A DNA stretch of 63,859 nt from Vitrella brassicaformis CCMP3155 (lineage: Eukaryota > Protista > Chromerida). The stretch is from positions 1 through 63,859 of the forward strand of contig CDMY01000260.1 in the NCBI GenBank assembly GCA_001179505.1. The letters are read 5' to 3'. How positions within the stretch are numbered: position 1 is the stretch's first letter; the number at the start of each line of letters is the position of its first letter. Positions 53,483-59,129 of this stretch are shown piece after piece. The translations under genes and the position numbers were made by a program. The notes under the pieces were generated by a model. That model had not been told where the DNA came from. It did no database searches and worked only from the letters and a program-made list of their open reading frames with translations.

Positions 53483-55642
53483 CTACTCTTCTAGGTGCAG
53501 GGGCTGGAAGCTGCCGTCCCCGTTGACATATCCCAACTCAGGCCACGCGAAATGGCAGTCAGTGTCGCCCTGACACACACACACACACATGCACGATTTT
53601 ATCGATTTCGATCGCTGAGCGACTGACCAGGTGCTGATTGAAGCCCTTCTGGAGGCCCTGCAGGCCACCACGTGCGACCGCCTCGTCCATCCGTGCCTTG
53701 TGCACGACCTCACGTAGCCCCAGCACTCGCCCCTTGACGCCATCCACCACTTGGAAGCACTGCAGCGGCACCCGTACCGTCGCCCCGCCCACGTCGGCCA
53801 TCCCCCCCACCACCTGCCTGTTGCTCTCCGTCTTGAGCGCGGCACTCATAACAAAGTGCTCCACGGCCGAGTGGATGCGTCTGCCGAATGTGGTCTGGTG
53901 GCTGAGGTTGATCGTCCTCTTAATGTCCGTGGCTGCCTTGTGCTGGTCGAAGCAGAGGGCGGCGATGTGCCAGCCCATCAAGGCCCCCTCGCCATCCCCC
54001 AGTGCGAGGCGGGACGGCGCGGGGTCTTCGCCGTCGCTGTGGGGGGCGAGGGGCAGTAGGTGGCTCAGGTGGGCAGCCAGCTCTCTGTGCGGCCTCAAAG
54101 CTCCATTGACGGCAGCCATCACCTCATTGGGTAGCTCATTGAGCACGGCCATGTACTCACGGTCGGCGAGGACGCGGGGGTGTTCCGGAAATCTTCTCTC
54201 GTACAGCAGCCGTGCCCCAGCGCAGCAGCGTTCTGACGGCCTGCCTCCACTCGTTGATGCTCTCCTCGCTCCCCCTACCGGAAGCTGTTGCTGCTGCTGC
54301 TGCTGTTGTGTTGGTGGCGGTGGTGGGTGTTGTGCGTCGAGCGGCGGCGAGGCGGAGGCAGGACGCCCACGCCCAGGACCCTGGCGGCGTGCGCGTGGGC
54401 GTCGGCGATTCGAGGGCGCCGAGCGTCTGCAGGGCCATCTCCAGCGCTGGGCTGCAGGTCCCGTCTTCGTCATTGTCGACATCTGCCGGCCGGACCTTCC
54501 GACAGATGCACTCGATTGCGTGGATGTTGGGGCTGTGTGGGTTTTCGTCCACCATACTGGCGGCTTCCTCCCCCGTCGAGCACACTGCAATTCGAGGATT
54601 GTCGTGCCCCACGGCAGTCGCTAGCAGCAGCGGCTGGAGGCCGTCTTGGTTGGGCTGGGTGAGGATGGACGCGTCAATGGCCGTGAGGATCTCGATGTAC
54701 TCGAACACGGATCTTCGCGAGAATTGGGCGGTTTCGACGAGGTGGTGGACGGCGCTGTTGCCGACCTCTGACGGCCCGCCCTCGTAGAAGCTCAGCGGGT
54801 CGAGCTCGTAGCTGGAGTCCTGCTCCTGAGAGAGTGGACAATGACACACAGCCTCCTGCATGTGCCTCCTTTGCCCTGCCCCTCACTCAACTCACCGAAG
54901 GAGGTCTTGACTCCGGCACCCGCTCGCTGGCCAGCGTCGAGTCGCGCTGCAGCAGGCGCCGATACACCTCGAGCAGGGCCCTCTCATATTGGGGCGTCGG
55001 CGTCGCGCCGTTCCACAATCGGGGCGGGAAGATGATGCACAGGCCGCGCACGCGCACGCCATGCCGCAGCAGCACCTCCAGTGCCGTCAGGTTCGCGTTG
55101 GCCACGGCCTCGCGGATGGGCCTCGTGTTCATGCCCGCCTCGTATGGGAAGCCGCCCTCGCACCGAAACCACGAGCAGTCCAGGTCGGCCCCTCCGGCGA
55201 TGAGGGCCTCGAGGATCTCCCGCTGCCTCTGCCGGCTCTCCCAGGTGGGCAGCGACAGGCGAGACCGCGGCGGCTGGCCGTCAGCAGACATCGATTCGAA
55301 ATCCACCGCCGCACAGCCGGTCTGGTCGTCGATTGCGATCGAGAGCAGGTCGTAGCTCAGCGGTTCATGCTCACGAACGGGTGGCTGAAAGCGAATCTCT
55401 GCGTTGGGGTCGGCTCCCTCGCGGAGAAATGCTGTGACCCAGGAGGGAGTGGCGATGCGGCGTTCAATGGTGTACGAGAGAGTGCGGGTGGCCGAGCTAC
55501 AGTTCGGCGAGTACAGCTGCCTGCGGAGGTTCTGGATGATCTCGTGCTGCCGGTGAGGGGGAGAGGGTGGCGCTTGAGAGGGTGACGATGCATCAGCAGC
55601 CGGACTGCTGGCTAGACTGCTGGCGCTCGACGGAGATGCCAT
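53483..55642 (-). CDS. Ankyrin-repeat-like protein of a lineage-expanded family; apparent frame break near 54200
   Basis: FLREGADPNA, LEALIAGGADL, PIREAVANANLTALEVLLRHG, QDGLQPLLLA, AVRTLLRWG, then EYMAVLNELPNEVMAAVNGAL...DVGGATVRVPLQCF...GLREVVHKAR...KGFNQHL|GDTDCHF. Confidence 0.7.
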
Positions 55643-55987
55643 TCACTCACTCAGTCACTCACTCACGATGGATGGCCTCTCGACGTGCGTACGTGGCCTG
55701 CAGCGTACACACACATGTTGTGTGACCAGATATATGCCGCGTGCACGATGAGAGAGAACCGTGCATGTCAATTTGTGTTGGTCTACCTTACAGAAGAGTG
55801 TGGCAGCTCCGCGTGTAGACAGCTGGGTGGCGGCTTTGGCGGGAGTGGTCGTCCTGGGATAGATACAAAGCGCGCAGGGTTTGTAGGGCTAAGGGTTTCG
55901 AAGACAGAGGGAAGGGCAAGGGCCTGTAAAACGCAGCACTACAGGGTGTTTTCCTTCTGTGTGGTTTTCCCGTCGCCTGTGCTGGTG

Positions 55988-57891
55988 ATGGAGAGAGCTA
56001 CGCGTGTTTGTCGGATGGAGGGGTGCGAGGAGGCCGAATCGGCCCCTCCCCCTCCACCTTCCCCCTCCCGACCCTCCCACCTCTGTTTTGCCCCTCCTCC
56101 CGCCCGCCACAGCAGCCGGAGAGGCCCTCATCTTGCTTTGCTCAATGGAGTGTGCGTGATGGTCGTGTTGACGCTTCTGTTTGCCGGCGGTGGTCTGGCG
56201 CAGCGGTTAGATGGCGTGGTTGACCCTGGAGGTGGCGGCGAGACCGTCTATGTGCGTCAGGAGGACGGTGTGGACGGCCTGTGTGACGTCTACACGTACC
56301 GTGTCAAGGAGATCAGGACGGCTGGGTACAAGAACGACGGCAAGGCCAAGCGGATGCTGCAAGACGCGAGCGATCTGGTGAGCACTGAGCACACACACGA
56401 GCAGAGGGGCGGGGGGAGAGGGCTGGGGACACACACACAAGCTGTGACAGAGAGGGAGAGGAGGGAAACTTTCGGTCGGTTCGTGAGATTATGTGTCTGT
56501 GTGTGTGTGTGTCAGGTTCGTCCCATAATGTGCAAGCGGCGGTGGCAGGTGGAGCTGATGCGAGAGTTCAAACCCGACGTGAAGGAGCTGCTCGGCCTCA
56601 ACATCAACCGCGGACAGGAAGTCAAGGTGCGCCATCCATCGACCTCACACAGACAGACAGACAGACAGTCAGCAGACCTCTCATCACACCACACGTCTGT
56701 CTGTCTGCTCATGTGGTGTGTGTGGCAATCGATCAGATCCGCGTTCGCTACAACAACGATGATTTCGTGCCGTACGAGCAGGTGATCGGCACGGTGCTGC
56801 ACGAGCTGGTGCACAACTCCATCAAGGGCCACAACAGCTCATTCTGGGACCTTTACGAAGAAGTCGAGGCGGTGAGCTGAGCTGAGCTGAGCTGACAGAC
56901 AAGCACCTTGACGGACGGAACCATGAGCATGATGCGAACATGTTTGCTGTGTGTGATGTGGTGTGTCGACTGGTGTGTGTCACAGGAGTGCCGGAAGCTC
57001 CGTGGCGGGAAGCCGTGTGAGAATGAGTGCCTGCTGACCGACGGCGACTCCAACTCCATCGAGGAGATCTGGACACGCATGACCAGATGCCCCGATGGTT
57101 TCTTCACACGTAAGCCCTCCCCTCCTTGTCCCTCCCCCTCCCCCTACCCCACCAACCAAGTGTGTCGCGTGACGTGATATATGTGCGTTTCAGAGCCCGT
57201 TATCATCGGCATTGTCTGTGCGGGCATCTTTGTCCTGCTCACCACCACCTGCTGCTGCTGGGGCGTCAGGCGGCGGCGCATCAAACGGCGCCGGGAGCTG
57301 CAGCGGCTGCAGCAGGCCGCCAACTCGTCTAGTCGCGGCAGCCGGCGGTCCAGCCGGCGGTCGAGCTTGCAGAGCGACACGGAGGGCATATCGCTGCAGC
57401 TGGACGAGAGGGAGCAGATCAGGATCATGGTGGAGAACCAAAGGCGGGAGGAGGAAGAGCTACGGATCGCTCTCGCCGCGTCGCTTTCGGTACGGAGGGA
57501 CACAGAACTGACACACACGACACGGATGGTCACGTGTTTGTGTGTGTGGCTGCATCGATTGCAGGAGGCTGAGCTGCAGGAAGCCGCCCGCAGCAGCAGC
57601 CAGACCCCAGCTGTCGTCACGGGGTATCCCCTGCCGCCCCCCTACGCCCCCCAGACGCACTCACAGACCTCCGTGGCCCCCCCACCGGCGCCAGTGCCCG
57701 CAGTTTGGGAGGACACGCGAGCGACAGAGACAGTGAGGTTGCCGCCCCCCCGGCCGCGTGAGGCCGACCAGGCCTCTGAGGACGATGAGGAGCTGCAGCT
57801 GGCTTTGCGCATCAGCGCCATGGAGCATGAGATGAGGCAACAGCACATGCAGCAACACCAGCAGGGGCGGGGGAATGGCAACAGGATATAA
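55988..57891 (+). CDS. Wss1-like (WLM) zinc metalloprotease domain in a predicted type-I membrane protein with two cytoplasmic UIMs (6 exons)
   Basis: AKRMLQDASDL|VRPIMCKRRWQVELMREFKPDVKELLGLNINRGQEVK|IRVR...FVPYEQVIGTVLHELVHNSIKGHNSSFWDLY is the WLM signature with HExxH...H. Hydrophobic N-segment VCVMVVLTLLFAGGGLA, TM PVIIGIVCAGIFVLLTTTCCCW, UIM-like EEEELRIALAASLS and DDEELQLALRISAME. All introns phase-consistent. Confidence 0.85.
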
Positions 57892-59129
57892 ACCATGACA
57901 GCTGCCGGGGTGCATCTATAGTTAGTTGATTTGATTTGCTTTGTGTCGTGGGTGTGGGTGTGGGTGCGGCGTCGACCGATCGATGCTCTCTCTTGTCGCT
58001 CCCCTTGCTTGTTTTCTTTCTTTACTTTTTGCTCCTTTCCTTTCTCTCTTTGGTTCCTGGGTGTTACCCAAGTGACGTGACGTACGTGACATATGGATGC
58101 ACGCCATGGCGAGCGTGCTGCATGTGTGCGTGGGTGTGTGCGTGGGTGTGTGCGTGGGTGTGGGTGTGGGTGTGGGTGTGGGTGATTGATTGACTGACTG
58201 AGAATGATGCCTTGCCTTGCCTTGACCGAGTCCTTTTTTGAGCTCGCCGGCCCCCCACTCGCGCCAGGCCAATGGAGGCCAGGGGGCTTTTGTATCGTAT
58301 CGATATATTATGTACAGGTAGCCATCCCATCCATGGCTGGCATGGGCCGATCGCGTCAGCGAGCGACTGAGTGCAAGTATCGCTGCTGCTGCTGCTGCTG
58401 TAAACCGACCTTATGTGTTGATACAAACTCTCCAGTGCTGCTGTTACGGTGCACCAGACACACACGCGCCCTGCCCGGTGCACGCGCCATTTTCCTCTCT
58501 CTCTCTACGTCTCTCTGCATGCTACCTGGTGTGGGTGCTGGTGTTATGGATGCTTTTGATGGATGGATGGGTGGAATTCACTGCATGAGCCTCCTCGCCA
58601 TTTCTCCTTTTCCAGTAATAGATGTGTGTTTGGGGGTGTGCGACAGCTGCTGGTGGTGATGGCTTTGCTTTCGTCAAGGGGGAGGGGAGGGGAGGGTGCG
58701 TGCGGCTTGCTATTTATCGGTGTGTCGATGGTGACCGCTGACTGACTGATGGATGTGATGGCTTTTGTGGACAGACACCGGCGTGACTTCCTTCATGTCG
58801 TGTGATGATGTGGTGTTGCATGTTTGGTCAATGACCAACCAATGCGAGAAGAGAATTATTGAAGTGTGTGGGTGCGGATGGATGCAAATGTCCTCAGACA
58901 GGTCCCAACGTCCATGCATCCATCCATCCATCCATATATCCCCCTTGTCTCATTAAGCCCCCGCCCCCTCCTTCCTCTAGTTCCACATCATGTCAGCCAG
59001 CACCTCTCGGCCGACACTGCTCGTCACCCAAGCGGTCCGTCGGCCTCTCGGCCCCACTCTCTCCAACGTACCCTTTTCAGACTCATAAGCAACACACACT
59101 GCTCGCCTCATCCTGGCAATCTGCACAGG

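Follow-up and report, generated by a model that had tools for sequence, protein, structure and literature searches.

Analysis of a 63,859-nt stretch of the Vitrella brassicaformis CCMP3155 genome (contig CDMY01000260.1; the whole stretch is called the window), which is eukaryotic in character with ~58-60% G+C and short GT-AG introns, revealed a plus-strand gene at 55988-57891 for a WLM-family (Wss1-type) zinc protease, whose catalytic core lies between two hydrophobic segments and is followed by a long tail carrying two sequences that resemble ubiquitin-interacting motifs (UIMs). In the reading that we consider probable, the product is a membrane-anchored protease with an extracytoplasmic core and a tail that controls its own sorting and turnover; this interpretation is supported in silico, and its functional part is deduced from sequence. 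The existence of the gene is not new, because it is already in the public annotation; new for the family is the predicted membrane-anchored WLM layout with a UIM-like tail.

The reading frame opens at the ATG at 55988 and closes with the stop codon at 57889-57891, and its six exons (Table 1), separated by five introns of the GT..AG type, join into a single open reading frame (ORF) of 460 residues. The public annotation (P0001, "WLM domain-containing protein", 403 residues) has identical splice sites and starts at the in-frame ATG at 56159. Spliced transcripts of the gene were found in several runs. Two complementary DNA (cDNA) contigs of 1586 and 1540 nt, from two runs, start at 56052/56065, end at 58118 and lack all five introns, and the translation of cDNA contig SRR646408_781 equals P0001 letter for letter. 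Three joints (56626/56737, 57109/57194 and 57489/57565) are seen directly as GT..AG in the contigs; the remaining two are located at microsatellites, which were skipped in the read alignment, and there the coordinates of the contig pieces match the predicted splice sites exactly. The cDNA evidence, named in advance by the original prediction as able to refute it, places the WLM exons and the transmembrane and UIM exons on one mRNA and not on separate genes, confirming a real, expressed Vitrella gene with WLM, transmembrane and tail exons on one spliced transcript. A chimeric gene model, which the original prediction had held unlikely on the grounds that the exons join in phase, or a mis-assembly is rejected, because the cDNA contigs span WLM, transmembrane and tail exons in one ORF and the intron positions agree with those of a paralogue.

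The WLM core, described beforehand as intact, proved to be so. The deduced protein matches the WLM profile (PF08325) with 118.4 bits against a cut-off of 26, over profile positions 12-118 of 190, and exons 2 and 3 score 46.9 and 44.4 bits on their own. Residues H132, E133, H136 and H142 (P0001 numbering) are invariant in an alignment of 61 WLM proteins, and all 11 invariant family positions are retained in the alignment with 60 relatives. The best solved relatives are Schizosaccharomyces pombe Wss1b (5JIG/5LN5, E 1e-13) and Saccharomyces cerevisiae Wss1 (5XBN), with the whole crystallised core including HExxHx5H aligned. In the AlphaFold2 model, the predicted local distance difference test (pLDDT) score exceeds 95 over residues 45-160, and Foldseek superposes the model on 5LN5 (E 9.6e-12, TM-score 0.90, root-mean-square deviation [rmsd] 1.3 Å) and 5XBN (TM-score 0.85). 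By sequence, motif and fold, the protein is a true member of the WLM family.

Directly after the core, the family consensus retains an SHP-like GFxxxGxRLG, and Balakirev et al. 2015 (PMC4559962) report conservation of both SHP and VIM across the family. Among the 61 nearest WLM proteins, a VIM/SVIP-type p97 motif occurs in 21 and RanBP2 zinc fingers in 20. In the Vitrella protein, the Cys-rich linker encoded by exon 4, which has no Pfam or other database match and is modelled by AlphaFold2 with low confidence, stands in place of the C-terminal part of the WLM profile and of the SHP box. Regular expressions found no SHP box, VIM, SUMO-interacting motif (SIM) or PIP box in the 460-residue model, the protein has no SVIP/VIM match in Pfam, and RanBP2 fingers are also absent. 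The UIM-like motifs lie beyond the transmembrane helix; hence there is no SUMO or ubiquitin reader on the predicted protease side. Judged from its motifs, the protein is devoid of the features of the Wss1 functional class, namely p97 motifs and a SUMO or ubiquitin reader on the same side as the protease.

Hydropathy fits the signal-like segment before the WLM domain and the 22-residue transmembrane segment after it (peaks in Table 1), and the cysteine triplet and basic run reported directly behind the latter are present in the order CCC, W, GV and RRRRIKRRR. The first segment would act as a signal anchor; with ATG 56159 as the start, it could instead be a signal peptide that is cleaved off. 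Its 15-residue flanks hold 3 K/R and no acidic residue on the N-terminal side, and 1 K/R and 3 D/E on the C-terminal side. By the positive-inside rule, positively charged flanks lie on the cytosolic side of a membrane; because the flank charges follow this rule, the tail and any N-terminal extension are predicted to be cytosolic and the WLM domain lumenal or extracellular. Six ectodomain cysteines are common to P0001 and its Vitrella paralogue, and five of these are absent from 59 other aligned WLM proteins, a pattern that suggests a domain moved to an oxidising compartment. The topology originally put forward, with the protease outside the cytosol and the tail inside, is favoured by the charge distribution, the five Vitrella-specific cysteines and the loss of Cdc48/p97 motifs. 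The polybasic stretch was also considered in passing as a p97-binding VBM; a stop-transfer signal is simpler, and no claim is made for the former. An N-S-S sequon for N-glycosylation follows the third zinc-binding His in both Vitrella proteins (56818-56826, residues 200-202 of the 460-residue model), where the family consensus reads N-A-x; it is a possible topology reporter.

A different arrangement would leave the WLM domain in the cytosol or nucleoplasm, with the hydrophobic segment(s) forming monotopic hairpins or peripheral anchors on the cytosolic face of the endoplasmic reticulum (ER) or nuclear envelope, and the enzyme processing ubiquitin/SUMO conjugates or DNA-protein crosslinks. Every characterised WLM protease does have a nuclear or cytosolic site of action and SUMO-, ubiquitin- or DNA-linked substrates, and UIMs and protease would then share one side, as they do in ataxin-3 or DA1. 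However, the second segment, with 22 residues, is by general knowledge too short for a hairpin and is followed by 9 K/R, the five lineage-specific conserved cysteines suggest an oxidising compartment, SHP, VIM, SIM and RanBP2 fingers are all absent, and the ectodomain, because it is acidic (isoelectric point 5.4), does not look DNA-binding; we regard this arrangement as very improbable. Another possible destination is the complex plastid, where the N-terminal segment would serve as the signal part of a bipartite targeting signal and the tail would face the periplastidial compartment with its SELMA ubiquitination, the enzyme acting in import or quality control. Vitrella possesses a complex red plastid whose import uses ERAD-derived (ER-associated degradation) ubiquitin and Cdc48 machinery, and the combination of a signal-like segment with ubiquitin-binding motifs would suit it. 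Yet a transit peptide would look different from the short, acidic stretch behind the hydrophobic segment, whose 15 residues include 1 K/R and 3 D/E, the protein has no Cdc48-binding motif, and the HMMER and word-indexed searches described below found no relatives in other complex-plastid lineages, which makes this destination scarcely credible.

The start codon bears on the extent of the N-terminal side. The ATG at 55988 is the first after 55930 and is in frame, and a 199-nt contig that covers it comes from an RNA-type run which also holds spliced contigs of the gene; this ATG is thus transcribed at least sometimes. In the 57-codon extension, G+C at third codon positions (GC3) is 0.61 vs 0.81 in the rest of the ORF, and in the extension of the paralogue it is 0.52. 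Translation of the latter is obligatory, since the hydrophobic segment of the paralogue has no other ATG in front of it and a stop codon lies five codons upstream of the ATG of the extension; GC3 was accordingly rejected as a coding test for residues 1-57, since an obligatory extension is equally GC3-poor. On balance, we lean towards the long form starting at ATG 55988 over that starting at ATG 56159. Whichever start is used, the hydrophobic segment is expected to serve as a signal peptide or as an anchor, leaving the remainder of the protein oriented as before; the product would then be a single-pass (type I) or a two-pass membrane protein, the latter with both termini in the cytosol. A four-codon upstream ORF (56145-56159) begins at ATG 56145, and its TGA overlaps the annotated start ATG 56159 (GTGATGG); it could influence the choice of start.

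The paralogue (P0002, 323 residues, contig CDMY01000603.1), confirmed by two cDNA contigs, has the same succession of extension, hydrophobic segment, WLM domain, six conserved cysteines, transmembrane segment, CC and polybasic stretch, with 71% identity there; its tail is short, acidic/basic, and without UIM or PPxY. Four intron positions are common to both Vitrella genes, including a phase-1 intron directly before the transmembrane exon. The paralogue gene consists of nine exons vs six, its additional introns being one within the Cys-rich linker and three downstream of the transmembrane exon. Comparison of the two gives ratios of non-synonymous to synonymous substitutions (dN/dS) of 0.23 (ectodomain) and 0.17 (transmembrane and polybasic part), dS being at least ~0.8; by this measure, the WLM-linker-transmembrane part is under purifying selection. 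From the same layout, the common intron positions and the low dN/dS, it follows that the membrane layout predates an old duplication in the Vitrella lineage and that selection has maintained it.

When 1.84 billion representatives were searched exhaustively with HMMER, 1472 WLM relatives emerged, of which only the Vitrella paralogue aligns beyond the WLM core; neither a hydrophobic segment before the WLM domain nor the same layout was found among the best 150 of the 1472. The hydrophobic C-termini of three relatives (P0009, P0010, P0085) were rejected as candidates: they look like read-through or frameshifted ends, and these proteins have no N-terminal hydrophobic segment. The nearest named relative is the 225-residue WLM domain-containing protein XP_002772260.1 of Perkinsus marinus, an alveolate like the alga-like Vitrella itself; the original prediction had already pointed to this group. 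The 20 top matches looked up by name come from Perkinsus, Trypanosoma, a chytrid, a streptophyte, a choanoflagellate and metagenomes, and include no canonical soluble Vitrella WLM gene. The best non-Vitrella match (P0003, a metagenomic protein of 382 residues; Logan/ENA) has three tandem WLM domains (Pfam 370 bits), the first with a degenerate HExxH. Word-indexed protein searches, for which the queries were full-length P0001, residues 40-235 and a read-through of exons 1-2, returned P0001 and the paralogue only; the full-length search was swamped by low-complexity words, and 8000 candidates were scored. A metagenome scan with the ectodomain and transmembrane alignment matched 152 pattern stretches, none encoding a relative, and querying the ESM Atlas by features, with either the entire protein or residues 150-240, brought no usable match. 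Full-text literature searches joining "WLM domain" with "transmembrane" or "signal peptide" produced incidental co-occurrences only, and the Wss1/SPRTN literature treats the family as nuclear. The claim that no WLM protein of such architecture has been described therefore stands, none having emerged from the HMMER search (best 150 inspected) or from the literature. The "re-engineered" label of the original prediction is also reasonable, with a soluble-type Perkinsus WLM protein as nearest named relative and a membrane layout older than the Vitrella duplication.

The tail consists of 185 low-complexity residues rich in Glu, Arg, Pro and Gln. It contains the two UIM-like motifs and, between them, LPPPY, so that the PPPY (PY) motif claimed earlier is present. 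The UIM consensus used was an acidic run, a hydrophobic residue, xx, Ala, xxx, Ser, xx and an acidic residue; in 100,000 shuffles of the tail, one UIM match occurred in 0.04%, two in none, and PPxY in 1.2%. Two UIM matches together with PPPY are improbable by chance. UIM1 matches the Pfam families UIM_2 (PF23625; 19.0 bits, E 0.0014) and UIM (PF02809; 16.3 bits), both below the cut-off of 21, and in the Protein Data Bank (PDB) seven of its eight matches are UIM-bearing chains (S5a/Rpn10, Hrs, ZFAND2B, RAP80); UIM2 has no Pfam or PDB match. Of the two Pfam profiles proposed as checks, PF08325 was hence exceeded by far and PF02809 was not reached; the two UIMs of the original prediction are upheld as consensus matches on predicted helices and fall short as profile matches. 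The motifs are best described at pattern level, and their identity as UIMs is probable, not established.

Given such a tail, the protein could be regarded as a lineage-specific by-product of exon shuffling without a specific role, its tail motifs being chance products of low-complexity sequence. The composition of the tail, the sub-threshold UIM scores and the failure of the HMMER, word-indexed and metagenome searches to find an orthologue outside Vitrella would all agree with this. Against it, expression with correct splicing is seen in several runs, none of the catalytic or invariant residues has been lost, dN/dS for the protease and transmembrane part is ~0.2 against an old paralogue (dS ~0.8 or more), and none of the 100,000 shuffles reproduced two UIM matches; a by-product of this kind is quite improbable.

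In the preferred reading of a membrane-anchored protease with a self-regulating tail, the protein would enter the ER membrane, with the protease domain lumenal or extracellular and stabilised by disulfides, and with the tail and any N-terminal extension in the cytosol. The protease would be detached from the DNA and Cdc48/p97 context of Wss1 and might, in a compartment of secretory, endolysosomal or surface type, cleave membrane-proximal proteins; tethering ~40 residues from the bilayer could give specificity, as DNA proximity does for Wss1. A WW-domain ligase of the Nedd4 type would dock on PPPY, and ubiquitin carried by the enzyme itself or by sorting adaptors would be bound by the UIMs, such that the tail drives endosome/lysosome-type sorting or down-regulation, as the PY and UIM tail of LAPTM5 does. 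By this analogy, the tail most likely sets the location and lifetime of the enzyme.

The same motifs might instead serve substrate recruitment: cytosolic UIMs would gather ubiquitinated membrane substrates, and the lumenal WLM domain would clip their lumenal parts, giving ubiquitin-coupled proteolysis across the membrane in ERAD or endosomal quality control. This would suit a pair of UIM-consensus helices on the predicted cytosolic side and an active site kept near the membrane by a ~40-residue linker, and there is a precedent in the rhomboid protease RHBDL4, an ERAD-linked ER membrane protease for which two preprints mention a ubiquitin-interacting motif (10.1101/848754, 10.1101/850776). However, PPPY beside UIMs typically marks a protein that recruits a ligase for its own sorting (LAPTM5, PMC2064599), regular expressions detected no p97-binding motif in the 460-residue model, and the paralogue is without any UIM. 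A role in ERAD or endosomal quality control is, in our view, unlikely; that a cytosolic ubiquitin mark is coupled to proteolysis across the membrane, with UIMs capturing ubiquitinated membrane proteins and the WLM domain clipping their lumenal or extracellular parts, seems distinctly unlikely.

Several points count against the preferred membrane-anchored, self-sorting protease. Its predicted topology is based on hydropathy, the positive-inside rule and the cysteine pattern, and disulfides in the ectodomain are likewise predicted, with the Cys-rich linker modelled at low confidence. WLM proteases are known solely from a DNA or SUMO context, and activity free of DNA is assumed here. Both UIM-like motifs are below the Pfam cut-off, UIM2 finds no profile or PDB counterpart, and PPPY sits within a Pro-rich stretch, a PPxY turning up in 1.2% of the tail shuffles. 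The paralogue is without the tail, and therefore the tail is not needed for the role of the core. Finally, the choice of start codon is tentative: most transcript contigs begin at 56052-56099, and a single 199-nt contig reaches 55930.

Table 1. Features of the Vitrella WLM gene, with positions in the window
Feature	Position	Strand	Basis
Transcribed leader 5' of first ATG	55930-55987	+	199-nt contig covers 55930-56128; ATG-free from 55930 to 55988
Exons	55988-56377, 56516-56626, 56737-56871, 56986-57109, 57194-57489, 57565-57891	+	Joined ORF
Possible N-terminal extension, residues 1-57, Pro/Arg-rich (5' untranslated region [UTR] if start is 56159)	55988-56158	+	In frame, without stop
First hydrophobic segment, residues 49-71	56132-56200	+	Kyte-Doolittle 19-mer peak 2.39
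WLM metalloprotease domain, spliced across exons 1-4	56327-57003	+	Pfam PF08325, PDB matches, AlphaFold2/Foldseek
Zinc-binding/catalytic motif HELVHNSIKGH (HExxHx5H)	56800-56832	+	Alignment with Wss1 motif
Exon 4, Cys-rich juxtamembrane linker, ~40 residues	56986-57109	+	C166, C170, C190 confined to the two Vitrella proteins
Predicted transmembrane segment, residues 255-276, then CCC-W	57196-57261	+	Kyte-Doolittle peak 2.49; conserved in paralogue
Putative polybasic stop-transfer stretch RRRRIKRRR	57268-57294	+	9 K/R in 15 residues after transmembrane segment; paralogue RRRRMKRR
UIM-like motif 1, residues 339-353, split by intron 5 (57490-57564)	57448-57567	+	Consensus match; helix pLDDT 86-90
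PPPY, residues 376-379 (LPPPY, residues 375-379)	57634-57645	+	Regular-expression match
UIM-like motif 2, residues 425-439	57781-57825	+	Consensus match; helix pLDDT 87-89
3' UTR, minimum extent	57892-58118	+	Transcript contigs stop at 58118, directly before repeat

Apart from the coding features, introns 1 (56378-56515, 138 nt) and 5 (57490-57564, 75 nt) have lengths divisible by three and no in-frame stop, and their retention would add 46 or 25 residues, respectively, with the frame intact; the contigs show spliced forms only. Microsatellites coincide with, or lie close to, splice sites and also occur in the 3' UTR: (GT)n directly before the intron 1 acceptor (56484-56513), (CAGA)n in intron 2 (56640-56680), (GAGCT)n from the intron 3 donor (56872-56893) and (GTGGGT)n in the 3' UTR (58119-58190). 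Transcript assemblies are interrupted because of them. One contig has a 1230-base AC..AT joint from 57150 to 58381 with only 20 letters on its shorter side, most likely an assembly artefact at a repeat. On the minus strand, a divergent neighbour (54157-55700) is annotated with 471 residues; its transcripts end near 55697, and its 251-residue terminal ORF has no Pfam match. Between its transcripts and the leader of the WLM gene lie ~230 uncovered bases, and the promoter region may therefore be bidirectional.

WLM/Wss1 proteases and SPRTN have been studied almost only as repair enzymes for DNA-protein crosslinks, with DNA binding, ubiquitin/SUMO reading and Cdc48 considered to keep their broad specificity in check. 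If the preferred reading is true, the WLM fold would be a general-purpose, re-deployable protease, and membrane tethering could substitute for DNA tethering in conferring specificity; if the ubiquitin-coupling reading is true, a quality-control or shedding mechanism would have arisen from a DNA-repair protease, with WLM working without DNA or Cdc48. In this free-living organism related to the parasitic apicomplexans, the PY and UIM tail offers a testable link between the ubiquitin system and a probable lumenal protease. The layout is known from two genes of one species and its topology is predicted; a specialist would find a WLM core outside the cytosol surprising.

Compared with known Wss1/WLM proteases, the Vitrella protein has the same PF08325 domain, HExxHx5H zinc site with catalytic Glu, 11 invariant positions and fold (TM-score 0.85-0.90, rmsd 1.0-1.6 Å), whereas its domain is flanked by a signal/anchor segment and a transmembrane segment, bears five extra conserved cysteines and, by prediction, is located outside the cytosol, apart from DNA, SUMO and Cdc48. 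The Perkinsus marinus protein XP_002772260.1 is ~50% identical over the WLM core, including HELVHNS, but is without the N-terminal hydrophobic segment, transmembrane segment, Cys-rich linker and UIM/PY tail. The ADAM and MT-MMP sheddases are type I proteins in which the HExxH zinc protease is extracytoplasmic and the juxtamembrane region contains Cys, with a transmembrane segment and a Pro-rich cytosolic tail. Foldseek gave matrix metalloproteinases, ADAM-8 and snake-venom metalloproteinases as weak fold matches only (E 0.07-0.4), and, unlike the Vitrella protein, ADAM/MT-MMP sheddases belong to the metzincin family of zincins, are much larger, and have a pro-domain and no UIMs. In RHBDL4, the UIM is cytosolic and selects ubiquitinated substrates, and the protein binds p97. 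Unlike the Vitrella protein, a predicted lumenal zinc protease in which no p97 motif was detected, it is an intramembrane serine protease; the likeness lies in a membrane-embedded, ERAD-linked protease for which a ubiquitin-interacting motif is mentioned (10.1101/848754, 10.1101/850776). LAPTM5 is non-homologous, multi-spanning and without a protease domain; as a membrane protein with PY and UIM in its cytosolic tail, it nevertheless provides a functional analogy for the Vitrella tail, since its L/PPxY and UIM bind Nedd4 and ubiquitinated GGA3 and lead to Golgi-to-lysosome sorting (PMC2064599).

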